This document shows, in pieces, positions 8,335 through 24,900 of a stretch of 64,000 bases of DNA. The stretch lies in the sequence record KX397373.1; one strand, given 5' to 3'. How positions within the stretch are numbered: the stretch's first letter is position 1; each line of letters opens with the position of its first letter. The notes under the pieces are model-generated. The model saw only the letters and a list, made by a program, of their open reading frames with translations, was not told the DNA's origin and made no database searches. Position numbers and translations under genes: made by a program.

Positions 8335-9858
8335 ATGGGGCTTTATAACAAGGCGTCCCTCGAACTGTTGTGTCAGCAAATCGAACGGGACAATCCCGCA
8401 ACCGCGGGAATGCTTGACGCGGCATCGATATTGGTGCTGAGCGGGCCCTTAACCACTGGTCTTGGAACAAGCGGGCGCAATGCCCGCATTATCCTGAATG
8501 GTCGTTTAGGTAATGGTTTCGTTGGGAAGAAGGAATTCTTTTACGACCGTTTGAATATTGGACAAATGTTCAAAGGCATCACAGTGGTGTTTCAGGCAGA
8601 GGGGTCGTCGAAGACGTACGCCGATTTACTGCCAGCGCTCAATGCGCAATACGGGCTAGGGTTGACCACCGAGGACATTACCAACGGGACAACCAAACTG
8701 CCTTATGGCTACGCACCAACACAGCTTACGTTAACCATCGCTGCAACGTCCTTGGCTTATACGGGCACGTTAGCAGTGACCTGGTCACGGAAACCGGTGG
8801 GTGTCTTCCCGGAATCTGGCCCAGGTTCGAAAGTCATGCTTATCGGGGACATGAATGAAGGCTACTTCGGGGTTGTCACCGAAGCCGAACTGTTCAGTCC
8901 TGTCGAGGTTCTCAGTCAACTGAACGAAGGGCGTACTGAGCCTTACGGAACCTTGACGGCAATGCCAACCAGCCGATTCTGGTATAAGTTCGCCCGCGAT
9001 GGAAAAATCTTCTATCTCGCGAACTACAACCACATCAGTATTCGCTGGCAGGAGTTGTACCGCTTAGGGGGTATCTACGAAACGGATACCCCGGACAATA
9101 AACAGTTCCCGCCCGATGGGGTGCTGTCTCGTCAAAAGAGCGTGTTGAAAAAGAAAGAAAATGGTCGCGATTGGTATCTTTCACCAACCACACCGAAACT
9201 CGCGGGGAGTGACCCGTGGGAGTACGCCGGAACAAATCAAACCCCCGACCCGAACGGGGATGTAGCGAGACTGTTTGCGAAGATTGTGCCGTCGGGTGGT
9301 TTCGCCACCGGGGAATGGGATGGGCAAGCCATCAATGCGGACGGGTTCTGGATGTCGACGACGTCACAGGCCACACCTGCAAATACCTACGGCAGCAGCA
9401 TGATCGGCACTAACCAGGGTCAGTACAATAAGACCAACTTTGTTGGGGGCTGGCGGCCCTTCCTGGAACTGGTTGATGTAACCAAAATCGCATTAGGCTT
9501 GAACCCGTTCAGTGGGGTACCGGAAGGGGTGTTAAGAAAACCTCTGGTCTCCATCAGTCCAGAAGTGACGGATGTGTTGTTAACTCTGAGTGATGTGAAG
9601 TGGGAACAAAACGGGGCATTGCGTATTCCGTTAGTGTCGCAGACATTGCAACCGTTACAAATGACCACGTATTTTGGCTGGACACGGTTACTTCGTCCGG
9701 CACTCGTCACGGTAAAGCATGAGCCAATACGTAACGTCAACCAGGTAGGGTGGACTCGCCCTCTCCGGCGACCTGTCGCGGCACTGACCGTGGACTACAA
9801 GGAATCAACAGCCTTTAACTTAGCCAACGCCAACGGTGAGCTAAACGGCTTTAAATAA
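8335..9858 (+). CDS. Module 3, type A virion/fibre protein
   Basis: MGLY..SLELLCQQI.RDNP; KEFFYDRL; ends NGELNGFK. Confidence 0.75.
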   Translation: MGLYNKASLELLCQQIERDNPATAGMLDAASILVLSGPLTTGLGTSGRNARIILNGRLGNGFVGKKEFFYDRLNIGQMFKGITVVFQAEGSSKTYADLLPALNAQYGLGLTTEDITNGTTKLPYGYAPTQLTLTIAATSLAYTGTLAVTWSRKPVGVFPESGPGSKVMLIGDMNEGYFGVVTEAELFSPVEVLSQLNEGRTEPYGTLTAMPTSRFWYKFARDGKIFYLANYNHISIRWQELYRLGGIYETDTPDNKQFPPDGVLSRQKSVLKKKENGRDWYLSPTTPKLAGSDPWEYAGTNQTPDPNGDVARLFAKIVPSGGFATGEWDGQAINADGFWMSTTSQATPANTYGSSMIGTNQGQYNKTNFVGGWRPFLELVDVTKIALGLNPFSGVPEGVLRKPLVSISPEVTDVLLTLSDVKWEQNGALRIPLVSQTLQPLQMTTYFGWTRLLRPALVTVKHEPIRNVNQVGWTRPLRRPVAALTVDYKESTAFNLANANGELNGFK

Positions 9859-9869
9859 CAGGTGGAAAC

Positions 9870-10853
9870 ATGGCACTTAAACTTCTCTGGAAGAATCCCA
9901 ATACCGTTGCAACCACGATTGACATTTACCGTGGTGATACAGCGAACGTTAGCTTAACCACGCCACTGAAAACCGTGGATGGTGCGGAGACGTCGTGGAT
10001 TGACACCACGGCATTGTTTGGGAAAACGTACTATTACGTCTGGGCAGTAAACTCGGCAGTTGACCGGGTCGTGTCTCGTCCGCAGAAAATCGAAGTCTCT
10101 GACCGTCGTGGGCCAGGGTCGAACTTGTTGCGTCACGGTGATGAGAACTACGGTTACTACGGTGCGGTGTCGGCGGCAGACTTCGTTAACAGCACCACGC
10201 TGTATAACGCAGCGAAAAACACCTCCGGTTTACCGACCACCGTTATCTACCCGACGTGGCACAAATTTGCCCGTAAAGGGAAAGTCGTCTTTGTACCCAA
10301 CCAGTGGTTCGGGGATGCTACCTGGCAGAGTCTGTATGATGCGGGTCTGGTCTACGGGACGGATGATGTTGGCGGAGCCAATCCGGCAGGCACCGTTAAC
10401 CAGTTGACCACTTTTGATTTCAACGGTGAAACGTTCCTGATTCGTTTGATGAAAGGAATGCCAGAGGGTCTCGTGTGGGACGGGTCAAACTTTAACCCGA
10501 ATACCTTCGCCCCGATGAAAGACGTCTACGCCGAATACGAGGACTTCCTCTACCCGTTGTGTAAAGACGCGCCGTTACGCCAAAGAATGGTCTCGGTCGA
10601 TACACTCGACGGCAGGGCTTGGATACCAGGGGCAGCCTACAACAACCGTGTCAACTATGGGGTGATTTGTCAGGAAGCTCTGGCCAACGTGTTGGTACGT
10701 GGTACGCCGAACTACAACAACGACCCGTCAACACGCAGTTCCATGGAATCCACGATTGCCCGCAGTCGTACCGCCGGGACACCGTGGGTACCGGTTGTCG
10801 AATACGTGGGTCGTGTAGGTGAGACCTTTACCCTGCCGAAGACGGTCAAGTAA
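9870..10853 (+). CDS. Module 3, type B virion protein
   Basis: LKLLWKNPN..IDIYR; paralog of 3057 and 6409. Confidence 0.75.
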   Translation: MALKLLWKNPNTVATTIDIYRGDTANVSLTTPLKTVDGAETSWIDTTALFGKTYYYVWAVNSAVDRVVSRPQKIEVSDRRGPGSNLLRHGDENYGYYGAVSAADFVNSTTLYNAAKNTSGLPTTVIYPTWHKFARKGKVVFVPNQWFGDATWQSLYDAGLVYGTDDVGGANPAGTVNQLTTFDFNGETFLIRLMKGMPEGLVWDGSNFNPNTFAPMKDVYAEYEDFLYPLCKDAPLRQRMVSVDTLDGRAWIPGAAYNNRVNYGVICQEALANVLVRGTPNYNNDPSTRSSMESTIARSRTAGTPWVPVVEYVGRVGETFTLPKTVK

Positions 10854-13331: not shown

Positions 13332-13377
13332 AAAGAAAGAATTACCCACTCCTTTGCGGGAGTGGGTAATCTCTTTT
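13332..13377. terminator. Bidirectional intrinsic terminator between convergent genes
   Basis: ATTACCCACTCC / GGAGTGGGTAAT stem flanked by A-rich and T-rich runs. Confidence 0.8.
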
Positions 13378-13891
13378 ATTTCGCGTCGACTTTGTCTGTC
13401 GTTTCGCTTGGAGACGGGGTAATTAACACGGGTACCGATGGCTGGTCGAGGGGCCCGATGATACAACGGAAGAAGGTCATGCCGGAACCGCTGCCCGTCA
13501 GTGGGCTGACAGTTGAATAATCAAACGACGGTGAGCCTGTCAGTAATCCGTTGGTACGGTAAAAGCGTTTCCCCGACTTGGTATCGATGTTCCCGTCAAT
13601 CTTACCGGTGGCATCTTTATACAACTGCGGTGCTTCTAACTTACCACCGTCCCAGGTCGCTACCCAATTCGCCCCTACATCCATAACCGTAACGGCACGA
13701 GGGAAAACAGCGATGCTGGAAGCAACGGGTCGGTAATCAACAAATTCCGTCTCCACACCCGTACAGGTGTAGATGACCATATCGTGATTAGTGACAGGGA
13801 CAGTGGAGAACTGCCCTTTATCATCTGCGTTCATGGCACAACCTGAAAGCAACATGATAAACGCGAGCACGCACAACAAGTGCTTGGTCAT
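13376..13891 (-). CDS. Predicted lipoprotein
   Basis: N-terminal basic residue, hydrophobic stretch and LLSG-C lipobox. Confidence 0.7.
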   Translation of the reverse strand: MTKHLLCVLAFIMLLSGCAMNADDKGQFSTVPVTNHDMVIYTCTGVETEFVDYRPVASSIAVFPRAVTVMDVGANWVATWDGGKLEAPQLYKDATGKIDGNIDTKSGKRFYRTNGLLTGSPSFDYSTVSPLTGSGSGMTFFRCIIGPLDQPSVPVLITPSPSETTDKVDAK

Positions 13892-14025: not shown

Positions 14026-14550
14026 ATGGCAAAAACAGCACAAGCGCAATTTATTGCGATGTTCAACGCGGATAACACTGGTCTGGCGCAAGCACTGGTC
14101 GAAGCAGATGTTACCTTTGGCGCAGTGGCCGAATATGACCCTGCCGACGAGGCCGATACCCGCAACTCCAAAGTGACGCTGACTGCCGTTGCAGAAAGCA
14201 CGCACTTTACCGGGGAAAAGGAATTCCACTTCACCCGTCTGGCTGCAAGCATCGTTGGCGCGAAAGCAGTTACCGATGACCAGGCCGACTGGGACACCGA
14301 TGCCGAAGTCCTGGCATTCCTGAATGCTGACGTTATCACTGCCGGTAAAACGGACGATGCGTTTGCACTCAGCGAGCTGGACATTGTTCGTACCGATGGT
14401 GCGGATGATGCGAAAGTGATTACCGTCACTATCAAAGCCGGTCACCTGAAGTTCCTGCCAGGCGATGTGGCAGTCTACACCATTACGCAAGAGATCACTA
14501 AAACTGACCTCTCTACCACAAATGGTGAGCTCAACGGTTTCACAGCTTAA
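14026..14550 (+). CDS. Small acidic virion protein ending NGELNGF
   Basis: RNSKVTLTA...FTGEKEFHFTRL resembles the RNTR..L....F.G.KEFFYDRL domain. GAGGA RBS. Confidence 0.7.
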   Translation: MAKTAQAQFIAMFNADNTGLAQALVEADVTFGAVAEYDPADEADTRNSKVTLTAVAESTHFTGEKEFHFTRLAASIVGAKAVTDDQADWDTDAEVLAFLNADVITAGKTDDAFALSELDIVRTDGADDAKVITVTIKAGHLKFLPGDVAVYTITQEITKTDLSTTNGELNGFTA

Positions 14551-14573: not shown

Positions 14574-14606
14574 CGGGAGACCTGATGGTCTCCCGCTTTT
14601 TATTTT
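14574..14606 (+). terminator. Intrinsic terminator
   Basis: CGGGAGACC-TGAT-GGTCTCCCG followed by a T-run. Confidence 0.8.
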
Positions 14607-14632: not shown

Positions 14633-15139
14633 ATGGCTAAGTCGTTGCAAGAACTGTTTGTCGATATGATCAACGAAGTCAATCCAGATTTAGGGTTAAC
14701 GCTCAGTGACGTCACATTCGGTGCGCCTTCCGAATACACCCCTGCGGATTCAGGGGACACCCGCAATACCGTGTTGACTTTAGTGGCAAAAGATGACAGC
14801 CCGAATTTCAAGGGCAGTAAAGATTACCACTTCTTCCGCTTCAATTTCACTAACCCTGGTGGTGTCACTACCCCAACATTAACCACCGGGGATTTGATTG
14901 GGAACTGGCAGGACGATGCAAAGGTCTTGATGGTCATGAACATGATGCTGCCGAATTACAAACTGACAGCAGAAGAGATTGCCATCGAACGCGTGACCGT
15001 GGATGACACCACGTTAGATGTACGCATCACTATCGACCCCAACCATTTAAAGTGGCACGGGACATTTGTGACACGCGTAATCGACGAAGGAAAAACCAAC
15101 CTGCAATGGTTGAATCCCGAGTTGAGCGGGTTCAAATAA
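14633..15139 (+). CDS. Small virion protein, paralog of 14026
   Basis: DVTFGA..EY.PAD..DTRN..(V/L)TL.A shared with 14026; ends NPELSGFK. Confidence 0.7.
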   Translation: MAKSLQELFVDMINEVNPDLGLTLSDVTFGAPSEYTPADSGDTRNTVLTLVAKDDSPNFKGSKDYHFFRFNFTNPGGVTTPTLTTGDLIGNWQDDAKVLMVMNMMLPNYKLTAEEIAIERVTVDDTTLDVRITIDPNHLKWHGTFVTRVIDEGKTNLQWLNPELSGFK

Positions 15140-15189
15140 AAAGAAAGCGACCTACTACCCGTAAAGGTAGTAGGTCTGCTTATTTTATT
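15138..15189. terminator. Bidirectional terminator ending the minus-strand rSAM/fibre gene run
   Basis: GACCTACTACC / GGTAGTAGGTC stem with A-run to the left and T-run to the right. Confidence 0.85.
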
Positions 15190-15192
15190 CGC

Positions 15193-15861
15193 TTACAACA
15201 AGCCTTCTTCGGTCGCCACGGATTTGATACCCGTGAAGTCCTGTGCTTCGGCCAGTGTGCGAATCTTACGCTTGAGCTCCGTCATCGCTGCGTGCAGTTG
15301 CGCATCACGCTCAACAATAGCGGCCAGCACCGCTTTACACGCTGCAACGTCGAACGGGTGTTCTTCACTGCCTAAGCGGTTGTTCTGCGCATCCAGCCAA
15401 TACCCCGGCGAGGTATCGGATTGAACGTACGAGGCCAAGGACGCACGAGACTTCTCATCGGCTTGCAGCAGGATGCCCTGGAATTCGATGTTCTCGTGAC
15501 GCTGAGTTTCGTAGCGTTCCGCGATACGGGTATAGATAGGCTGAATCTCTTGGTAGAGATAGTTTACCGTCGAGGTCAAGCCTTTGCGGATTTCATCCAA
15601 CGGCAGCTCTAACACGGTTTCGATAAACTCTTTCGCCTTACGCAGCGTGAACTGGGCTTCCGGTTCACTGAGGTCGTACTCACGCAGCTTTTTGACGGCT
15701 GCTTTATCCGATACCCCGTTCAACAGATGATAATGCAGCAGGGTACAGTACCCCTGCTTGGTTTCATCGTCTTTCGCCAGAATGGTCATGTAATTACCGT
15801 GGCGGTCAATCGGGTTACCGAATTCGAAGTAACGGGCCTTTATCTCGTCATTACTAAGCAT
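15193..15861 (-). CDS. DUF4376-like tail-fibre assembly protein with a possible PqqD/RRE-like N-terminal domain
   Basis: C-terminal half FQG..LQADEKSR.SL...W.DA.N.......AI..R......H.....LK..I resembles DUF4376. AGGAG RBS. Confidence 0.65.
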   Translation of the reverse strand: MLSNDEIKARYFEFGNPIDRHGNYMTILAKDDETKQGYCTLLHYHLLNGVSDKAAVKKLREYDLSEPEAQFTLRKAKEFIETVLELPLDEIRKGLTSTVNYLYQEIQPIYTRIAERYETQRHENIEFQGILLQADEKSRASLASYVQSDTSPGYWLDAQNNRLGSEEHPFDVAACKAVLAAIVERDAQLHAAMTELKRKIRTLAEAQDFTGIKSVATEEGLL

Positions 15862-16430
15862 TCAGATTCTCCTGCTAACCCGAGGTCCATCAGCAGGCCG
15901 AAGTCAACCATCTGGAAGTGTTCGGATAATTCCTCACCCCAGATAAATTTCATCTTCTCTGCTAAGTCCCCGTTCTGTTCCTGGAAGATAAAGATTTGGT
16001 GCATTTCCTCACCAAACGAGTCGAACTGATGGTTAGAACGCAGCGCACGTACGCGCACACCGATCAAATCCGCAGCTTCCGGATTCTCCGGGTCGGCCCA
16101 GTTTAATGCCAGACCAATCAGGTTATCGGTATCCAGGTTCTGCGTAGAGCGACGCAGGATTTCGATTTTGTGGCGCGGGAATTCCGCAACACGCTGTTCG
16201 AAGCCCGGATTACGGATGGCCACCTGCTCCACAGAGTTGTGTGTTTTCTCAACCCCGTCCAGCGGCAGAATGACGTTCAGCCCGAAGCGCACACACAGAC
16301 GACGAATCTCATCAGTAAACGTGTCTGGTTCCACAATCGCGTGGATGTTGTACATGCCGTGCTTTTGCATAAACGCGGCAACAAGGTGAAGATTACGCTT
16401 CGTAAAATTGTGTATCAGCAACGACTTCAT
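15840..16430 (-). CDS. Hypothetical protein in the rSAM cluster
   Basis: 196 aa, AGGAG RBS, overlaps both neighbours. Confidence 0.7.
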   Translation of the reverse strand: MKSLLIHNFTKRNLHLVAAFMQKHGMYNIHAIVEPDTFTDEIRRLCVRFGLNVILPLDGVEKTHNSVEQVAIRNPGFEQRVAEFPRHKIEILRRSTQNLDTDNLIGLALNWADPENPEAADLIGVRVRALRSNHQFDSFGEEMHQIFIFQEQNGDLAEKMKFIWGEELSEHFQMVDFGLLMDLGLAGESECLVMTR

Positions 16431-17736
16431 TCGCTGGTGCTCCTAATTGGTTTTTCTTCTCGGCTGCTAATTTGCGATCGCGCACACAAGACACACAGTA
16501 GCACTGGGTCTTATCGTTCAGATCGGTATAACGGGTAGTACCGGTTTTCTGGTAGAAGTATTCTGCTACCAGCAGTTTGGCGGTAGTCCAGCCACACTGA
16601 CGACGCTCGGCGTGATACGCTTTGCGGTCTTCCATTTCCCCGTCACCGTTCTCGTATGACGCCGCGGCACAACTACCACACGCGTGCTTCATCGGGCAAC
16701 CCAGGCACGTTTCTGGGTAGTTGGTGTACTGCGTTTGAATTTCGTTCAACAGCTTATTGTCGTCGATATTGACAATCTCACGGCCACGCAGTTCTGCGAT
16801 AGCCTGACGTGTCGTTACCGTGGACATAAAGCGGTTACAGCCGTAAATCTTGCGGTCGAAGCCCAGGCAGGTCATGTGGGTTACGGTACCGCAGAACGGA
16901 CGCACACGCTCCGGGTTCAGACGCGTTGCTTCGTCGTCCAGGAGCTTCTGACGCCAATCCGGGTCCCAGGTTGCCATGAAGTCCAGGCCATCCGGGAAGA
17001 TGTGGGTCAGGCGGTTACGTGGGTCTTTCTCAAACCCTTTGTCGAACCAGTAGTCAATCACGTCCATCATCTGCAACGCAATCGACATTGCCATGGTGCG
17101 CGGCAGAATGTCTTCGTACGTGACGTTACCGGAAATGGTACCACCGCCAGTGACGTCCATCAGGTGCTTCATGGACTCGGCGTATTTCGGCAGGGTCTCA
17201 GACGTAAAGGTGGCTTTGATACCCAGTTCCAGGATACCGACCGATTTCAGGTAGTTGTAACCACGCATCGCTTTTTCGTACGACCCTTCACGGGTCGTGG
17301 TGAAGATACGATAGCGGTCGTGCACTTCCGGCAGACCATCGATAGACACACCGATGGACAGTTTGTCACGCCAGCGTTCGATAATCTCGCGGTTCAGCGG
17401 CTTGTCGAATAACGTGCCGTTCGTCGAGATGGAGAAGATAACATCACGGTTATCACGCTTCGCCAGTTCTTCGGCCGTTTCAAATACGGCTTTCAGAATC
17501 TTCGGCTGCATCATGGGTTCACCACCGATGATATCGATGATAACTTCCACGTTCTTCAAATGACGGTCACGGTCGAAACACGCATGAATGAAGTCCACTG
17601 CATCATCGGCTTTATTGTTACGCGGGTATTTACGCTCGTAGCAATATTCACAGTCGAGGTTACAGGAGAGGTTGGTCACCACCTGATAGGTTTTGGTGAT
17701 TTTGGGCTCTTGGGCCGGTGCTTTGGTATCACGCAT
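16393..17736 (-). CDS. Radical SAM/SPASM-domain peptide maturase
   Basis: CNLDCEYC (CX3CX2C); IIGGEP; SISTNGTL; SIDG. SPASM-like cysteines: CGTV..C..DRKIYGCNRF and CLGCPMKHACGSCAA...C. Confidence 0.92.
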   Translation of the reverse strand: MRDTKAPAQEPKITKTYQVVTNLSCNLDCEYCYERKYPRNNKADDAVDFIHACFDRDRHLKNVEVIIDIIGGEPMMQPKILKAVFETAEELAKRDNRDVIFSISTNGTLFDKPLNREIIERWRDKLSIGVSIDGLPEVHDRYRIFTTTREGSYEKAMRGYNYLKSVGILELGIKATFTSETLPKYAESMKHLMDVTGGGTISGNVTYEDILPRTMAMSIALQMMDVIDYWFDKGFEKDPRNRLTHIFPDGLDFMATWDPDWRQKLLDDEATRLNPERVRPFCGTVTHMTCLGFDRKIYGCNRFMSTVTTRQAIAELRGREIVNIDDNKLLNEIQTQYTNYPETCLGCPMKHACGSCAAASYENGDGEMEDRKAYHAERRQCGWTTAKLLVAEYFYQKTGTTRYTDLNDKTQCYCVSCVRDRKLAAEKKNQLGAPANEVVADTQFYEA

Positions 17737-18634
17737 TGCGATTTAACCCCGCTTGTATTACACGATTCATGTACTGGTAAGCGTCATAGCCAATGACTTC
17801 GGCCAGACGGTTACAGCCCGAGTTCAACACATCAATGGCATTGTCAGACTGGTCAAACGTGGCATCGGATTTTACCCACACCAGATTGCTACAGTCGTCA
17901 CAGTGCTGCTTGAAGAACTTGTTGATGCTGAGCGTTTGGTGGAACCCGTTCAGCGTGTTCAGCTCGGTCAACTGGTCGTGCATTTTGTTGTACCCGTACA
18001 TAAAGTTCATGACGAGATCCTGGTTAAGCGGCTTAGGCATGAAGTTATCAAACATCACACGGTAACCGTTTAAGCGGTAATGGTACAACGACTCGTGGAG
18101 TTTCAACAGGTCGTAGAACCAGTGCTTCGGTGCTAACTGGGCACGGGTAATCACCGACCATAACGTGATGTTGTCCAGCGCGTCAAACACCTCGAAAGCA
18201 TCGTAGCGACGCTCCTCAGCGATACGCAGCAACGGACGTTCGGATTCTGCATAGCCGTCAAAGGAGACGAAGATGCGATCCATTTGCTCGAGCACCGGCA
18301 GCTGGGCCGGGGTCAGTCGCAGACCGTTGGTGTACATTTCATGCTGTAGGTGCGGATAACGTTCCTTCAACTCAGCCATAAAGTCCTGGATTTTATTGAA
18401 CGCCAACAGGGGTTCACCGCCCGTCCAGTTAATTTGCTGAATAGTAGGATGCGCTTCCAGCGTTTCAAACAGCTTCTCTCTTTGGATGTCGCGCGCACTG
18501 TCCTTGACATCCATATACCCAACACCGCCACAGAAGCTACAATCGAGATTGCACTTCGAGGTGGTGACAATCGACAGCTCCATCGGAGTTGACGAAGGGT
18601 CGCGACGAATAGCCGACACAGCTTCTTCACTCAT
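17729..18634 (-). CDS. Second, shorter radical SAM protein
   Basis: CNLDCSFC; WTGGEPLL; YTNG; VSFDG. Only CDDC..C at the C-terminus. GGAG RBS. Confidence 0.88.
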   Translation of the reverse strand: MSEEAVSAIRRDPSSTPMELSIVTTSKCNLDCSFCGGVGYMDVKDSARDIQREKLFETLEAHPTIQQINWTGGEPLLAFNKIQDFMAELKERYPHLQHEMYTNGLRLTPAQLPVLEQMDRIFVSFDGYAESERPLLRIAEERRYDAFEVFDALDNITLWSVITRAQLAPKHWFYDLLKLHESLYHYRLNGYRVMFDNFMPKPLNQDLVMNFMYGYNKMHDQLTELNTLNGFHQTLSINKFFKQHCDDCSNLVWVKSDATFDQSDNAIDVLNSGCNRLAEVIGYDAYQYMNRVIQAGLNRNA

Positions 18635-18650
18635 TGCAGATTTACTCCAG

Positions 18651-19538
18651 TTATTCGAAAGTCAGCTTGAACAGCGGGTCATCTTTGATGTCCACACCCG
18701 TCTTTAACACGAACGGGTCGTTATAAGCATCAAGGATCTGGTTCAGAATAGCCTGACGGTCATTCACACGCCGTAAGTCATCTAACGTGACCGTGCGAGC
18801 ATGGAAGGCAGACACTGCGGTTTTCTCTTCAGCCGTCAGTTCTACTTTCGTCAGCAGGAACGCTACCAGTTTGTTCAGGTCTGCTTCGGTTGCAGGTGCT
18901 TCACCGAACTGCGTCTGCACCAGGTACTGCATCCACGGTTTGCGGATACGCTTGGTGATGTCGTGTTCGTCAAAGATTGCTTCGAATTGTTTCTCAGCCG
19001 GGTTCCAGACAAACTTGTAGCTGTAGGCCAGCAGGTCAAGCATGTTGGTAATGCCGTGCTTTTCAAAGCCAACGATAGGGTAATACTCTTCGACACCGGT
19101 ATACTGCTCAGTGTCTTGCGTTACCTGCGTAAACCAGCCAGGCATAGACCCCATGTAGTCCCAGCTCCATTCACGGCGGGCCATCGGTTTCAGGCCACTT
19201 TCGGTAAACGGAATCAGGAACATTTCCAGGTCAACCACCTGGTTCAATACCGCATCGCTCAGGAAGTATTTCCCATCCACTAAGCGACCTTTCACATCTT
19301 GCTCACCGGCCGTGATGTGAATGTGCTGCACGCTACGACCCGCTAACGTATAATCGGCTTCCACCGTATAGTTCTTCGGGTTAGCCAGCTCACGTCCACG
19401 AACCTTTGGCCACTCCCCTGGCAACTGACTGATCAGTCGCACCTGGTCTAACAGGTGGAATTTCACACTGTCGTACAGGCTGATATGCAGTGGGAAGTTT
19501 TGCGTTGTCTTAAACGCAAGGTGTAGATCGTTCTTCAT
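18651..19538 (-). CDS. Hypothetical protein between the precursors and the rSAM genes
   Basis: 295 aa, AGGGG RBS, short gaps to neighbours. Confidence 0.75.
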   Translation of the reverse strand: MKNDLHLAFKTTQNFPLHISLYDSVKFHLLDQVRLISQLPGEWPKVRGRELANPKNYTVEADYTLAGRSVQHIHITAGEQDVKGRLVDGKYFLSDAVLNQVVDLEMFLIPFTESGLKPMARREWSWDYMGSMPGWFTQVTQDTEQYTGVEEYYPIVGFEKHGITNMLDLLAYSYKFVWNPAEKQFEAIFDEHDITKRIRKPWMQYLVQTQFGEAPATEADLNKLVAFLLTKVELTAEEKTAVSAFHARTVTLDDLRRVNDRQAILNQILDAYNDPFVLKTGVDIKDDPLFKLTFE

Positions 19539-19548
19539 TTAAGTCCCC

Positions 19549-19755
19549 TTATCGGTTCCCCGCTCCGTGACTACAACCACCGCTACATGTCCAGCTACAA
19601 GACCCGCCGCAGTTATAGTGCGATAACGGTAACCCAGCAAGGTTGTTAGTCGTACTAACCGTCCCCTGGGTTGCGATGAACGAGTTAGCGTCCGCCGTCT
19701 TGATATAGCCTTCCACTTGCACCATTTTGTCACGGATGTTTTTGAGTGAAATCAC
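19549..19755 (-). CDS. Short Cys-rich precursor-like peptide P3 (4 Cys)
   Basis: GTG start after GGGGG RBS. ISLKNIRDKM leader and HYNCGGSCSWTCSGGC core are homologous to P1 and P2. Confidence 0.8.
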   Translation of the reverse strand: MISLKNIRDKMVQVEGYIKTADANSFIATQGTVSTTNNLAGLPLSHYNCGGSCSWTCSGGCSHGAGNR

Positions 19756-19799
19756 ACTAACCCCCAAATTTGTAAAAAGTTAACTGGGAGACGAGGGCG

Positions 19800-20198
19800 T
19801 TACCGCGTTGGCCCGGAACAACCGGAACAACCAGAGCAGCTTGAGGAACATGAAGAAGAACAACCTGTTGAACACGTTCCTGAACAGCCGTTTGCACAGC
19901 CTCCTGAACATGCACCCGAACAGCCCGTACAGGTCGAAGAACAACCCGAAGTACAGCTGGACGAACAACTTGCCCCACACGTTCCCGACGCAGAACCTGA
20001 GCACCCGCCGGAACACGACGAACATGTCCAGCTACAGGTACCGCCACAATCATAATGCGCACGCGGCTGGCCGCCAAACAACGTCGAGTTGTTCGTGGCT
20101 TTATTGCGAATATAGGTCTGCACCCCTGCCGCGTTTTTCAATGCGGTATTATCAATACTATTCAGACGGTTCTGAATATCTTTTAGGTTGATAGCCAT
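19800..20198 (-). CDS. CX2-3-repeat precursor-like peptide P2 (132 aa, 20 Cys)
   Basis: AGGAG RBS, ATG 20198. MAINLKDIQNRL leader; HYDCGGTCSWTC then a Ser/Gly/Thr-Cys repeat. Confidence 0.88.
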   Translation of the reverse strand: MAINLKDIQNRLNSIDNTALKNAAGVQTYIRNKATNNSTLFGGQPRAHYDCGGTCSWTCSSCSGGCSGSASGTCGASCSSSCTSGCSSTCTGCSGACSGGCANGCSGTCSTGCSSSCSSSCSGCSGCSGPTR

Positions 20199-20209
20199 GA
20201 TGTCTCCTA

Positions 20210-20593
20210 CTACGGCCCAGAGCAGCCAGAACAGCCCGTACAGCTCGATGAGCACGACCCCGAGCACCCGCTACATTTACCGGAGCACCCGCCGGAGCAA
20301 CTGCCTGAACAACCTGAGCAACCCGAACACCCGGTAGAACAACCACCCGTACAGCTGCCGGTACACGTCGACGTACACGTTCCCGAACAACTGGTACAAC
20401 TTGCCGAACACCCGTTAGAGCACGACCAGCTACACGTACCACCACAATCTAATTGACCCGGTGTCCAACCCGCAAAGCGCTCTTGCGCGTTATACGCTTG
20501 CGAGGCAACTTGCGCATCAACGCGAGGTCCGGTGGCGACATTGGCTTCCACTATTTGCAGGCGGTCGCGTATGTTTTTAAGTGAGATTGCCAT
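20210..20593 (-). CDS. CX2-3-repeat precursor-like peptide P1 (127 aa, 21 Cys)
   Basis: AAGGA RBS. MAISLKNIRDRL leader; DCGGTCSWSC then a Ser/Gly/Thr-Cys repeat. Confidence 0.88.
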   Translation of the reverse strand: MAISLKNIRDRLQIVEANVATGPRVDAQVASQAYNAQERFAGWTPGQLDCGGTCSWSCSNGCSASCTSCSGTCTSTCTGSCTGGCSTGCSGCSGCSGSCSGGCSGKCSGCSGSCSSSCTGCSGCSGP

Positions 20594-20610: not shown

Positions 20611-20644
20611 AAAAAAGAGGACACTGCCATAAAGACAGGTCCTC
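20611..20644 (-). terminator. Terminator-like hairpin between the fibre gene and the first precursor
   Basis: Minus strand GAGGAC-CTG...CAG-T-GTCCTC followed by TTTTTT. Confidence 0.55.
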
Positions 20645-20659: not shown

Positions 20660-21859
20660 TTAGCGTGTACCAGCTTCTGCTTGTACGTCGTCGCGAGTCG
20701 TGAGACTGTTGTTGACGTGAACCGCAGCTTGCACCACACCACCGTACGTCTTGTGGAGGTAGTTCGGGTGTGGGTTGTCCGCTGCAACGTGGTTCGCCAG
20801 GTTCTGGTTTGCCTGCGAGATAGCGTTGGTATTGTTCGTGATGCGGGTGTTCTGCGCGGTAATCTGGGCTTGCAGGTTATCAATCTTCTGTTGGAAGTCT
20901 TGACCTTGCGATTCCAAATCACCGACACGCTGCGTTAACGCGTTCAGGGCAGACTGCAAATCATTGACAGCTTTCTGCAACTGCAACACCAGGGAGTTGA
21001 GGTTCGCCAAGGCGAGCGACATCTTCTGGTAGTTCTGCGCCACGGTGTTCAGCTGGTCATTCCATGCCACCAGAGATTGCACCACTGCATCGATACGGGC
21101 TCCCAGTGCAGTATCGGCGGTTTTCAGTGAAGCAATTTCTTTTAAGGTGTCATCAATCTGCGTTTGAACCGCGGCAATCAGTGCACGAATCTCGGTTTCT
21201 GTCAGACCGTTGATCTGGTGAATATTGAGACTGTGGACGTTGCCTTGTGCATTAACGTGCGCATTCAACGCATCAAGGAAGTCTTGTTTCAGACCGTCGA
21301 TGATACCTTTGATTTGTTCGAGCTGTACCGCCGACCCGGAGTTAATCGCGTCTTTGATGCCCGACAGTACCGTGATGATAAACTCGAACCCGTAGATGTC
21401 ACCCACGTCTTTAAACGTAGGTGCTGACGGGAACGTATCCGGAACGTTACGCAAGTCTTTGAAATCAACCGTGCGGTCTTCCAGTTTCAGCTCTGCAATC
21501 GCCTGAGTAATGGCAACAACGTTTGCTGACTGTGGACCACCGATGACCTGAGCCGAGATAGTGATGTCGGTTGGAATAGCAGAGTTGGTGACCACCACCC
21601 CCATCAGGATTTCTTGGTTCTTGGTAAGCTTCTCGTACGCCGGGTGAGCGAAGATCAGCTCATAGTCCGTCCCACGTTTATAGAAGGTACCGGGTTTGTT
21701 CGTTGCAGCCAGACGAAACGACTCCGCGTAAAACGGCCCGTCTGGGAATGCAAAGGCCCGGTTAACCTTACCGGAACCTAACGTAACGCGTCGTGTGACT
21801 GCGTTCGACGTCAGTGTCCCCTTTAGGTCAAACGGGTACTGATATACAATAGCGGCCAT
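20660..21859 (-). CDS. Tail fibre/baseplate-associated protein with a long C-terminal coiled coil
   Basis: AAGGAG RBS, ATG 21859. YPFD..G N-terminus, GPFY, G.DY.L, DLRNVPDTFP, heptad region, H....NPH motif. Confidence 0.75.
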   Translation of the reverse strand: MAAIVYQYPFDLKGTLTSNAVTRRVTLGSGKVNRAFAFPDGPFYAESFRLAATNKPGTFYKRGTDYELIFAHPAYEKLTKNQEILMGVVVTNSAIPTDITISAQVIGGPQSANVVAITQAIAELKLEDRTVDFKDLRNVPDTFPSAPTFKDVGDIYGFEFIITVLSGIKDAINSGSAVQLEQIKGIIDGLKQDFLDALNAHVNAQGNVHSLNIHQINGLTETEIRALIAAVQTQIDDTLKEIASLKTADTALGARIDAVVQSLVAWNDQLNTVAQNYQKMSLALANLNSLVLQLQKAVNDLQSALNALTQRVGDLESQGQDFQQKIDNLQAQITAQNTRITNNTNAISQANQNLANHVAADNPHPNYLHKTYGGVVQAAVHVNNSLTTRDDVQAEAGTR

Positions 21860-21902
21860 AGCCAAACTCCTTTGATTGGGGCGTCCGTGCCCCACAGCGC
21901 TG

Positions 21903-24900
21903 TTAAGACTTGAACATAAGATTGACCTGAATCTCGTCCAAGTCAACCAGCGAGTTACCTCCAGCGTATTCACAGGCCACTGTCAGAGTCAGCGTTCCGG
22001 AATTGTAACTGGCAACAAACGGAGGGTTCAGCGCATCTTTCCCGGTGTTCAGTACCACCGCCGGTTCAGAAGGCAGATTCGGGATGACCAGCTCACGCGC
22101 TACCCGCACCACACCAAAGCTCGATGTCAAATCGCTCAATGCATACAGCATGAACGGGGTATCAACATCGGTCTGTCGGAAGACGGTGCCGGTACTGTCG
22201 TCCACCACCTGTATCGCCAACATCTTCGTCTTCAGTGTTTGATACTGAGCCGCGGTCAGTTGCGCAGACAAAGTGGCCACAAACTCCACCCCAGCCGGAA
22301 GTCCTGAGCCGGTGACATTCACGAGGTCAGGACCCGTTGCAAACGGTATCTCCGCAGCGGACGGATTCACCCCGGACGTCAGGCAATACCAGAACATCGG
22401 GATACCGTTCGGTACCGCGTAACGCAGGCTAATCTGGCGAGCCGGATCACCAATATTCCCCGGCACCGTAAAACGCAACCTGGCCACCGCCATGTAGGTT
22501 TCCCCGGCGACGTGCGGCACAGACTCAGCACCGATCCACTTCATGTTAAAACTGGCCGCGCGGGCATTGTCTGCCGTTACGGCGGCCGTCTCAACCGGAG
22601 GTTTCAACCAGAAGCGCTCAGAGACATTCACCAGGTCTTGCCACCGCGTGGCACCAAACCCGCTATAGCGTTTCTGGATAGGGAGCGCAGGACGAGTTTG
22701 TCGTGTAATCCCTTTGGACAGCTCTTGTCCATCGGCATACCCGGCAGTGCCCGAGCCCGGTGTCGCTAACGGCACTTTGCTCAGTTGCGCCATTGACCCG
22801 ATACGGGCTTCACGGGCAGCGGACACATCGTGACGGTTAGCGACCGCAGCGTGCTCTACCAACTGCTTGACGTTACCGAAACGTTTCACCTTATCAAACG
22901 TCGACAGGGTAATGCGTTCGCTGTCCGTCACAACCGTACCGATATACAGCTGGGTATCGCTGTCCGGTTCCTGTTGCTCCAGCAGGCGGTATTGCGGAAC
23001 CCCGTTGACCAGCGCAGCGTGCATGTAGAACGTGCGGTTCTGGTAGTTAGTTGGGTACAAGTCACGGATATCGGAACTGTATTCGCCCAACGTGTAGTAC
23101 GCTGAACCGAATCGCAGCAACTCCTGTTCCGTGATGTACAGCGCCCAACCTTCCGCAGTCTTCGTCCCGGCGAGGATGTTATCCTCAGGTGTCCCGGTAC
23201 GGAAATTGCGGACGGTGTTCTTGTAGACACTGGCGGCAAAGTACAACCCATTAAACAACCATTTGGTCATCCCGATATAACCGGTCTCTGGCATCACCAC
23301 AATGTCGACTTCATTCGAAGACGGGTTCATGGAAATGAGCGAGTTCGTCCAGCCCCCGAAAGTCGTATCACACGACAACAGGAAAGAACGCCAGCGACTG
23401 TCTCCAACCACCCCCATTCGGTACAACGCCCCCAGGAACAACACATAGCCGTCGTCACGCTGAATCAACTTCGAGTTGGTGTACTGGTCGTGTGCCAAAG
23501 AGATACCGGCATCCGGGTCGCGGTAGTTCTCGACCACCGGTGACAACATCGTGGTACCCAACTGCACGTTCCCGTTGGTCACCGACATCGGCAGTTTCCA
23601 CACCCAGGTAAAGGTGTGGGTTACCAGCCGACTGGTGTTGTCCCACATGCGCACAGACGCCATGGCGAATGCCGCATTTAACCCACCGACATCGAACACT
23701 TGCAGCTTGGTTAATGTTTGCACGACCAACTCGTCGTTCCACACCGGCACCGCTGCTGCAATCGCCGCATTCAATGCTGCCCAGGTCGCATCCGATACCG
23801 TGATACGATCTGCGGTAAAGGTGGACGTCCCGGTCACGGTCTTGTACGGGAAAGACCCTGCCTCGGTAATAACACGACCGTTGATGTACAGTTGGCCATC
23901 TTTCCAGATATTCGGCGAAGACAGCAAGGTTCGGTAGTCAGGGTCGGTCACCGCGATACGCGCATTGTCTGGCCCCCAGCCCGGATAGTCCGGGAAGTAG
24001 CGAGACGATTGGGTATAACGGAGCTGGATAACCTCTGCGGCCACATTGAGGTGTCGCATCAATACCGTGTTGGCAGTCCCACCGAGGTGGATAAGGCCAC
24101 GCATGTATTGCTGGTACACCGACCCTACTGCACCACCCACGGTGGCGTTTGCGGTTTCGATAAGCGTTGTGCTGCTACCGAGTAAATCGTACAAACTCGT
24201 GTTCGGTGCTGGACTGATACCGATACGTGGCGGGTTGTTTGAATAAACGTCACAGAAGGAGTTCATCAACAACCCTGAGGACAGGAAGACCCTGTTCGTC
24301 AGCGCCACACCTTTGTTACGGTTGGTCACCGAGGGCAGAGGCTGGGCATTTGGGAACTCAATCTTGTTCTCGGTTAATGCGATCGGGAAGATTTTGTTCT
24401 CAAGCGTCAATAACCAGTTCTCCGTGTTAAGGGAGAGTGATACCGACCAGGCATCTGTCCACTGTGCCGAGGTATTATCGGAGAAGTACCCGTGCATCTC
24501 TGCACGCAACCGCACCATGTTCACCTGTGAGGCTGAATAAAACGAAGGGAGGTAGTTAACCGCATTCCCGTTCGGCCAACGGGCTTTCCCCTCCGCGGTA
24601 CGGTAGGCCAGGAACTTGGTTGTGGCATCGTCGCCATAACCGCCTTCTTGTACAATCAGCGCCACGTCGCCGTCTTTGTCTGGGTAATTGAAATTAATTA
24701 CCGGGATAGTCGAACTGTTTTTACTGCGCAGTTCGCTCAGACTGATACTCCAACCGCCAACAGTAAAGCGGGTGTTGTTGACAATAGACATCAACACAAC
24801 CACACGACCTTTGGTCACCGTCACTGTCGAATACTGACGATAATCTTTAAAGGCGAGGGTACTGCCGTTCGACCGGACACAGTCGGGCAGAGTGATCTGG

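Follow-up and report, generated by a model that had tools for sequence, protein, structure and literature searches.

The window analysed here is a stretch of 64,000 nucleotides (nt) of sequence record KX397373.1 (window coordinate + 124000 = record coordinate), from Erwinia phage vB_EamM_Stratton (genus Erskinevirus), a 244-kb SPN3US-like jumbo myophage. Between positions 15193 and 20593 it carries the eight minus-strand genes gp178–gp185, designated here, in order, P1, P2, P3, gp182, rSAM-B, rSAM-A, gp179 and gp178, where P1–P3 encode Cys-repeat proteins and rSAM-A and rSAM-B are radical S-adenosylmethionine (SAM) enzymes. Adjacent genes are separated by gaps of 10–66 nt or overlap by 8–38 nt. 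An earlier reading made from the letters alone (the sequence-only reading), which placed eight minus-strand open reading frames (ORFs) here in this order, was right on every one and on its position. The cluster is considered, with moderate confidence, to be a tail-fibre maturation module that would equip fibre tips made of Cys repeats with thioether cross-links; both this chemistry and the location in the virion are predicted.

In the 127 amino acids (aa) of P1 (gp185; 20210–20593), a 49-aa N-terminal domain precedes C-[ST]-[GS]-x repeats that extend over 78 aa; this tract holds 21 Cys, ends in CSGP and is composed almost only of Ser, Gly, Thr and Cys. In P2 (gp184; 19800–20198, 132 aa), the N-terminal domain comprises 50 aa and the Cys-repeat tract after it 82 aa, of which 20 are Cys. 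P3 (gp183; 19549–19755, 68 aa) is a short paralogue with an N-terminal domain of the same type, the junction motif C-G-G-S-C-S-W-T-C and only four Cys, which lie within 20 residues. In P1 and P2, most neighbouring Cys are spaced by 4 (14 times in each protein) and most of the others by 3; Cys makes up 25–27% of the tract, with Ser and Gly as spacers. All three proteins share the junction N-x-x-[LF]-x-G-x5-[YL]-x-C-x-G-x-C-S-W, followed by the (C-S/T-G-x)n tract, and their cores contain neither Asp nor Glu. All three also match phrog_6085, a PHROG of unknown function, with E values between 1e-27 and 1e-54 (1.3e-48, 1.1e-53 and 4.6e-27 for P1, P2 and P3, respectively). Shine-Dalgarno sequences are found 5–7 nt 5' of the starts of P1, P2, P3 and gp182, for example AAGGAAA before the ATG of P1 and GGGGG before the GTG of P3 (19755). 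The true start of P2 is most likely the ATG at 20198, and not the GTG at 20267 annotated in GenBank, because AGGAG lies 6 nt upstream of this ATG and the orthologues begin with MAI.

Orthologues of P1–P3 are present, in unchanged order and with both rSAM genes alongside, in all eight SPN3US-like lineages checked, which include Erskinevirus, Seoulvirus (SPN3US), Derbicusvirus (CR5), Wellingtonvirus (Kwan, pEa_SNUABM_11) and three metagenomic relatives; the junction C-x-G-x-C-S-[WF] is common to the P proteins of all of them. The situation in which relatives would carry the enzymes and lack the Cys proteins, named by the sequence-only reading as one that would speak against it, is therefore not seen in any related phage checked. 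Between diverged phages the proportion of synonymous differences in the P genes is saturated (pS 0.7–0.9), while that of nonsynonymous differences is low (pN 0.1–0.2), and the dN/dS ratio is 0.03–0.2 where it can be computed. Moreover, when P1 of SPN3US is aligned with that of a diverged metagenomic relative (L012), none of the 21 Cys columns contains a gap. The tract is therefore a conserved pattern and not drifting low-complexity sequence. P1–P3 are real genes in this frame, under strong purifying selection, and on this analysis the reading of the Cys ORFs as wrong-frame or low-complexity artefacts was rejected.

In the records examined, the Cys proteins are entered as 'hypothetical' or are missing, and P1 is unannotated in many related phages. 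In the SPN3US record (NC_027402; positions 9192–10221 of locus L002), the P1 and P3 orthologues are unannotated, and 'gp166' (9410–9745) is a wrong-frame call over the P2 orthologue; on the minus strand of L002 the true P1, P2 and P3 reading frames span 9829–10221, 9414–9818 and 9192–9398, respectively. Against the Cys-rich repeat family TIGR04114, P2 scores 18.5 bits, slightly under the cut-off of 20 bits, so that it is not a member; P1 and P3 give no match at E ≤ 0.01.

The two enzymes, rSAM-A (gp180; 16393–17736, 447 aa) and rSAM-B (gp181; 17729–18634, 301 aa), are both members of the Radical_SAM family PF04055 (54.9 and 52.6 bits, respectively; gathering threshold 29.5). The SAM-cluster motif of rSAM-A is C25-x3-C29-x2-C32. 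It begins 24 residues after the protein start, and there is no N-terminal RRE, the recognition element of maturases of peptides that are made on ribosomes and modified after translation (RiPPs). Seven further Cys in SPASM-like spacing follow in the C-terminal part, namely C282, C300, C344-x2-C347-x5-C353-x2-C356 and C381. An alignment of 11 homologues shows six of the columns to be invariant and that of C381 to be near-invariant, with Ser in the homologues P0091 and P0092. The motif expected for two auxiliary clusters is C...C, CX2CX5CX3C, C, compared with which the final spacing in rSAM-A is CX2C instead of CX3C.

rSAM-A aligns over its full length with the SPASM families TIGR04115 and NirJ, covering positions 5–345 of the 359 of the TIGR04115 profile. 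Its best NCBIfam matches are PapB (NF047865; 1e-38, 133.4 bits) and TIGR04115 (6.8e-35, 121.2 bits), SCIFF and other maturases of Cys peptides are among the further ones, and the closest solved relative is the thioether synthase CteB (5WGG, 8.8e-14). rSAM-A thus falls among the peptide maturases; a grouping of the rSAMs with cofactor or nucleotide enzymes, a further outcome that would have told against the sequence-only reading, is not seen. From these motifs and matches, rSAM-A is predicted to be a thioether-forming maturase of P1–P3, with P1 as a likely substrate. Beyond the SPASM region, residues 412–417 (within 16393–16530, minus strand) form an extra CxCxxC, with similar motifs in P0076 and P0079, two other long homologues that share this C-terminal extension; this could be an additional metal site.

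rSAM-B has the SAM-cluster motif C28-x3-C32-x2-C35. It is not a SPASM enzyme, because its C-terminal part has only three Cys (C245, C248 and C274). The CX3CX2C motif is also present in SPN3US and CR5, 5' of the annotated starts. As the starts of SPN3US gp164 (L002, 7346–8290) and CR5_154 (L003, 6200–7100) are placed downstream of the motif, the annotated proteins lack the catalytic cluster. In the records examined both enzymes are annotated as 'radical SAM' only, or once as an AlbA-like subtilosin maturase.

Three further proteins complete the cluster. gp182 (18651–19538, 295 aa) belongs to the phrog_8030 family, which has 27 representatives among 1.84 billion proteins. It contains no Cys and no invariant polar residue except for one near-invariant Asp, and it has no match in Pfam or NCBIfam. 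Its AlphaFold2 model is confident (mean predicted local distance difference test score, pLDDT, 92.5), and the best match of this model in the PDB has an E value of 0.29, with no RRE or PqqD structure among the 50 matches listed. The search for an enzyme or RRE identity of gp182 in Pfam, NCBIfam and PDB folds therefore gave none, and the protein has no invariant residues that look catalytic. Relatives of gp182 adjoin rSAM-A-like genes at three other loci, L005, L009 and L010.

gp179 (15840–16430, 196 aa; phrog_7988), found only in the SPN3US-like clade, had been called an orphan. Its model (pLDDT 85) suggests that it may have a degenerate rSAM-like fold: the closest structures are radical-SAM partial TIM barrels (SkfB, Cfr, DesII and anSME; probabilities 0.96–1.0), with a probability of 0.99 and a TM score of 0.52 for SkfB, and the cluster cysteines are missing. 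This 'dead rSAM' reading of gp179 stays tentative, because profile-profile comparison with rSAM-A and rSAM-B is not significant. The fold matches, being radical-SAM half-barrels, also led to the rejection of gp179 as a flavodoxin-like reductant. The related locus L005 holds three intact rSAM genes. gp178 (15193–15861, 222 aa; phrog_8169), the final gene of the unit, is a member of DUF4376 (PF14301; residues 115–208, 37.6 bits against a threshold of 25, E 3.2e-9), and a sequence search for solved relatives found none. Accessory proteins of the TIGR04116 type were found neither in Stratton nor at the viral locus L065.

IMG/VR was scanned with an alignment of rSAM-A and distant homologues, which returned 80 viral loci. 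A CXXX-repeat ORF is present in 75 of the 80, usually directly upstream of the rSAM-A relative and on the same strand, and in 13 of the 16 top-ranked GTDB loci (L090–L105). The GTDB proteins range from tandem 60–95-aa precursors in Firmicutes up to 500–670 aa in Margulisbacteria. The viral rSAM of L037, with 446.5 bits, is a true TIGR04115 member (cut-off 350), and two other viral relatives, those of L065 and P0091, score 293 and 273 bits; the CXXX target protein of L065 passes TIGR04114 with 36.5 bits. In Stratton, P1–P3 lie 1.8–2.9 kb upstream of rSAM-A on the same strand, in the target-adjacent arrangement of TIGR04115.

With L037 inside TIGR04115, the L065 target inside TIGR04114 and the pairing of the two, both the enzymology and the accessions given by the sequence-only reading prove right: TIGR04114 is indeed the Cys-rich repeat family and TIGR04115 the CXXX-repeat maturase. 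Its view of the Cys-repeat proteins and rSAM-A as a cognate pair of the CXXX-repeat or ranthipeptide type, with a putative rSAM-SPASM enzyme, is likewise supported by the PapB, TIGR04115 and CteB matches and the co-occurrence in 75 of 80 loci.

The pairing is not confined to phages. In Margulisbacteria/Termititenax metagenome-assembled genomes (L090–L093 and L007), CXXX ORFs of 500–670 aa, measured stop to stop, adjoin TIGR04115-like rSAMs, and L007, the only one of these loci whose neighbours were inspected, has no phage genes nearby. Therefore, the CXXX/rSAM family has cellular, non-tail uses as well.

The genomic setting of the Stratton cluster is that of a tail-fibre module. The P genes lie directly downstream of gp186–gp189 and on the same strand, beginning with the very large gp189, gp188 and gp187 (1689 aa) and continuing to the coiled-coil gp186 (20660–21973, minus strand; phrog_2163, 2e-108) immediately upstream of P1. 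gp186 is a virion tail protein, orthologous to SPN3US gp167 and phiKZ ORF134. The SPN3US orthologues of gp186–gp189, gp167–170, are abundant tail proteins by mass spectrometry and form a paralogue family with phiKZ gp131; in phiKZ, fibre proteins of this family make the baseplate fibres, with the N-termini of gp131–135 as the fibre base. Among 131 flanking proteins from a set of 40 dereplicated viral loci, the annotated PHROGs that occur most often are those of tail fibre, baseplate, tail and structural proteins, including phrog_2163 of gp186. In CR5 and Kwan a tail assembly chaperone is among the cluster neighbours.

The closest relatives of rSAM-A outside jumbo phages (36–44% identity) adjoin tail-fibre proteins that themselves end in the same Cys repeat. 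At L005, a 258-aa fibre with HxH...Y-x-T-E repeats ends in ...NASKLAGQTSGYYRCSGCSWTC, with the same junction as in P1–P3; a gp182-like protein and three rSAMs come next. The genes of L008 are arranged as in a P2-like myophage: baseplate V-, W-, J- and I-like genes (assigned by order and size) precede a 384-aa fibre that matches PF12571 (1.8e-40) and many tail-fibre PHROGs and ends in ...FDGSEDIYITMG-CNGCSGSCSGSC....; there follow a protein of about 250 aa, two rSAMs, a tail-assembly-chaperone-like gene, sheath and tube. The ~250-aa protein was aligned with gp182 by eye and has no phrog_8030 match. By this gene order, the accessory protein and the rSAMs stand where P2 keeps its fibre chaperone. 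At L009, a 451-aa fibre (KLATARTI...FDGSGNAYLDIG-CKSGCSGSC) precedes a gp182-like protein and a single 686-aa protein in which an rSAM-B-like domain is fused to an rSAM-A-like domain; this fusion ties both enzymes to one pathway. The lambda-like locus L010 has a 1617-aa GpJ-like protein, a 468–482-aa fibre (its start being uncertain) with a CXXX terminus, a gp182-like protein and an rSAM. More distantly, the CXXX protein of L065 comes after baseplate hub and wedge genes, and that of L037 is flanked by two tail-fibre genes.

A maximum-likelihood tree of 95 rSAM domains, in which SPASM enzymes that have no CXXX neighbours form the outgroup, shows the same association. The SPN3US-like rSAM-A clade (support 100/100) is sister to L005 and L008 (100/99), and an enclosing 100/100 clade also holds L009, L010 and one locus cut by a contig end. 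All other members of this clade with a complete locus are fibre-linked. The clade of TIGR04115 proper is the sister group of the whole SPN3US-like and fibre-linked clade.

It is this gene content, together with the motifs, conservation, co-occurrence, synteny and phylogeny, that underpins the view of the cluster as a tail-fibre maturation module. We infer the thioether chemistry, the position of the acceptor, the roles of rSAM-B, gp182, gp179 and gp178 and the incorporation into the virion, and the following mechanism may be proposed. P1–P3 would be small fibre-tip-like proteins made late in infection along with gp186–gp189. In the reducing cytoplasm, rSAM-A, with one SAM cluster and two predicted SPASM auxiliary clusters, would abstract a hydrogen from an acceptor residue, which would then become bonded to a Cys sulfur. 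The reaction would proceed unit by unit, each step removing 2 Da, with at most about 20 steps in one chain. By analogy with the archaeal pair CrpC/CrpA (see below), the acceptor is probably the residue at i+3 of each C-x-x-X unit, a Ser, Thr or Gly. The product would be a chain of small thioether rings, that is, a rigid, redox-independent and protease-resistant rod. rSAM-B may introduce a second modification or serve a subset of the sites, and gp182 and gp179 may present or chaperone the substrate in place of the missing RRE. The enzymes would stay outside the virion, and the modified P proteins would enter the baseplate fibre network, possibly as a P1/P2/P3 trimer. This might make sense because no disulfides can form in the cytoplasm, and outside the cell they would scramble; enzymatic thioethers would fix a defined and irreversible pattern.

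A broader and more tentative proposal, which we hold to be possible but a little short of probable, is that in many unrelated tailed phages a distal Cys-x-x-x repeat of the fibre is made into a thioether ladder by dedicated radical-SAM enzymes before assembly, and that in the SPN3US-like phages this tip has been split off as three small proteins, P1, P2 and P3, which would form a heterotrimeric polycyclic fibril on the baseplate fibres. If so, it would be the first case in which radical-SAM enzymes covalently mature a structural protein of a virion, and the orphan TIGR04114/TIGR04115 system would gain a biological role. The presence of exactly three conserved paralogues suggests, speculatively, a heterotrimer that matches the trimeric symmetry of fibres.

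Several points weigh against the maturation module. The modification of P1–P3 and their location in the virion are predicted from sequence. P1–P3 have no fibre shaft; with 68–132 aa in a leader-plus-core layout they resemble the small CXXX precursors of Firmicutes. Outside the Cys tract, only the 15-residue junction motif could be aligned between the P leaders and the L005 fibre, and this weakly (hhalign E 0.018), so that the leaders were rejected as homologues of the fibre shaft; the motif itself may be common in tail fibres. The Pfam SPASM model PF13186 does not match rSAM-A at E ≤ 0.01, and the enzyme falls well below the curated cut-offs of its best families (121 against 350 bits for TIGR04115, 133 against 340 for PapB). 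As acceptors the tracts offer Ser, Thr and Gly and, beyond these, no more than single residues of Lys, Asn, Ala and Trp, as against the Asp, Glu, Asn and Gln typical of ranthipeptides; the chemistry may therefore differ from that of the Asp/Glu type. The parts given to the remaining proteins are assigned from context: gp182 is a candidate substrate adaptor or fibre chaperone, gp179 is possibly a degenerate third rSAM paralogue acting as a non-catalytic partner, and gp178 may have a supporting role.

Finally, P1–P3 are not listed in the SPN3US virion proteomes of two papers. This should be taken as weak evidence, because the GenBank and RefSeq records of SPN3US either leave their genes out or call them in the wrong frame, and the searches took Cys to be carbamidomethylated; the 2023 search, for example, used a database of 273 sequences, which may have lacked the true ones, with carbamidomethyl-Cys as a fixed modification. 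The published SPN3US mass spectrometry may thus have missed P1–P3. The same data have gp161–163 at trace level, classed as non-virion, and gp164–165 not seen. The trace-level proteins are the orthologues of rSAM-A, gp179 and gp178, and non-virion status is what maturation factors would show.

The sequence-only reading had seen in the cluster a complete peptide-modification pathway, that is, a phage RiPP, in which the ~50-aa leaders would guide the rSAMs and the cores would be freed at lysis or by a host protease to act as an antibacterial, a signal or a chelator. The arrangement has the features of RiPP precursors, with a conserved N-terminal part of about 50 aa, a Cys-repeat core, small size and adjacent enzymes, one of them an rSAM-SPASM enzyme of the RiPP-maturase type; the tandem 60–95-aa precursors beside the Firmicutes relatives resemble classical RiPP clusters, and virion proteomes have not reported P1–P3. 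However, no peptidase, transporter, or RRE/PqqD-like family was found among the eight cluster proteins in NCBIfam, Pfam or PHROG, and the cluster has no leader peptidase, exporter or immunity gene, although a host protease might do the cleavage. It is set within the fibre operon on the same strand, and its nearest enzyme relatives all stand beside CXXX-terminated tail fibres. Every lineage keeps exactly three orthologous paralogues, including the nearly Cys-free P3, with an exact Cys pattern, as would be expected of a structural part used in fixed stoichiometry more than of a natural product that diversifies. With the sub-cut-off scores and the tail-fibre context in both genome and phylogeny, the claim of a released RiPP is not upheld and is considered unlikely.

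It is more improbable still that P1–P3 are non-virion assembly or metal-handling factors, such as a fibre scaffold or chaperone or a metallothionein-like or Fe-S reservoir inside the cell. A tract of 25–27% Cys with Ser and Gly spacers would suit metal binding, as suspected of CrpA (PMC13692751), P1–P3 are unlisted in virion mass spectrometry, and DUF4376 and, in CR5 and Kwan, the tail assembly chaperone are among the neighbours. A purely intracellular role is nevertheless hard to reconcile with the same repeat being the covalent C-terminus of fibre proteins in other phages, and dedicated rSAM-SPASM maturases favour covalent modification over simple metal binding. That the rSAMs act on a nucleotide, a cofactor or a host target, the Cys ORFs being unrelated neighbours or low-complexity artefacts, is a proposal with hardly any probability left. 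It could draw on rSAM-B, whose own matches are confined to generic radical-SAM cores, among them MoaA, viperin, QueE and NrdG (~1e-10). It is, however, largely refuted by the co-occurrence of Cys ORFs with rSAM-A relatives and by the purifying selection on these ORFs in this frame, and it is further opposed by the fusion in L009 and by the grouping of rSAM-A with peptide maturases and not cofactor enzymes.

The tail-fibre maturation module may be compared with several known systems. Like TIGR04114/TIGR04115, it has a target with Cys at every fourth residue next to a maturase, predicted to be of the rSAM-SPASM type, without RRE. Unlike that system, it has its own accessory (the gp182 family) and extra rSAM paralogues, and its rSAM-A, at 121 bits against 350, lies in a separate, well-supported sister clade. 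A literature search on the chemistry of TIGR04114/TIGR04115 gave no paper, only the database family models. In Methanococcus voltae, the rSAM-SPASM enzyme CrpC (TIGR04463) puts ranthionine links into C-x-x-X motifs of CrpA, a 28.8-kDa Cys-rich protein (PMC13692751, 2026). The resemblance lies in several thioethers (here predicted) on a whole Cys-rich repeat protein and in paralogous substrates with a common N-terminal domain. In contrast to CrpC, rSAM-A has no RRE and matches TIGR04463 with only 53.7 bits; the CrpA repeat has 17 residues with Asp, Gln, Met and Val acceptors, versus a unit of 3–4 residues of Ser, Thr and Gly in Stratton; and the CrpA/CrpC pair is archaeal, of unknown function and without a virion context.

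PapB and CteB, which make freyrasin and thermocellin, have three [4Fe-4S] sites and form repeated thioethers from Cys to side chains in CX3D-type repeats. They are, respectively, the best family match and the best solved structure for rSAM-A. Unlike the Stratton system, they yield small secreted products from short, RRE-recognised precursors with Asp, Glu or Thr acceptors. QhpD, which forms Cys thioethers within a subunit of QHNDH, is a further rSAM-SPASM enzyme whose modified protein is kept in a larger assembly, and its family TIGR03906 matches rSAM-A with 3e-18; there, three links to Asp or Glu are made in an enzyme subunit, whereas here tens are predicted in a virion-component repeat.

A different likeness is to the fibre-assembly chaperones P2 gpG, Mu U and T4 gp38/gp57A, which act in assembly only and are absent from the virion. 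Like them, the gp182-like protein and the rSAMs of L008 come directly after the fibre gene, and the orthologues of rSAM-A, gp179 and gp178 are non-virion in SPN3US. In contrast to the two radical-SAM enzymes here, the known chaperones have no enzymatic function and do not mark their substrates covalently, and no sequence or fold similarity of cluster proteins to them was found (Pfam; gp182 model against the PDB).

The type of enzyme-substrate pair is thus already known, from database family models and one archaeal experiment. What is new is the setting among tail-fibre genes, the accessory family of gp182 and the division into three separate proteins. A literature search gave no paper that connects radical-SAM enzymes or CXXX repeats with phage tails or tail fibres, and the link is absent from a compendium of RiPP rSAM enzymes (PMC10288494) and from a phage-RiPP mining paper (PMC11118758).

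If the tail-fibre maturation module is confirmed, it would place the TIGR04114/TIGR04115 system in a biological context. It would bring new chemistry into phage structural biology, with permanent cross-links at the host-facing part, and extend the recent finding that RiPP-type enzymes cross-link whole proteins. It would also mean that a part of the adsorption apparatus of SPN3US-like phages is unannotated or mis-annotated in the SPN3US records and may have been missed by standard proteomics. These phages are used as model systems and are candidates for the biocontrol of Erwinia and Salmonella. To produce such fibres in a heterologous host, the maturases and anaerobic Fe-S handling would be needed. 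The system is directly testable, as SPN3US has both a genetic system and published virion mass-spectrometry data.

At the transcriptional level, the unit ends at a bidirectional intrinsic terminator (15149–15176, both strands) between the convergent genes gp177 (plus) and gp178 (minus). It was anticipated by the sequence-only reading and is borne out by hairpin stems of 12 and 11 bp with T-runs on each strand. Another hairpin with a T-run is found at about 20615–20640 (minus strand), between the stop codon of gp186 and the start of P1; it could be an attenuator or a 3'-stabiliser that decouples fibre-shaft expression from that of the P genes.

Some observations concern the related viral loci and the remaining neighbours. 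In L014–L019, L023 and L025, mostly contigs of 110–190 kb with two shorter ones, the CXXX ORFs are broken by single in-frame stops, which would fit stop-codon reassignment in those phages. Reverse-transcriptase phrog_1423 occurs among the four sampled flanking genes per locus in 4 of the 40 dereplicated viral loci (L014–L087) and may reflect diversity-generating retroelements beside these fibre genes. In the window, gp175 (13376–13891, minus strand), near endolysin and tail-assembly-like genes, begins with a lipoprotein-type signal (…LLSGC) and is a predicted phage-encoded lipoprotein. Two tandem paralogues on the plus strand (14026–14550 and 14633–15139; 174 and 168 aa), with a terminator-like hairpin (14574–14595) between them, correspond by position alone to gp160 of SPN3US, which published mass spectrometry shows to be an abundant protein of the head.

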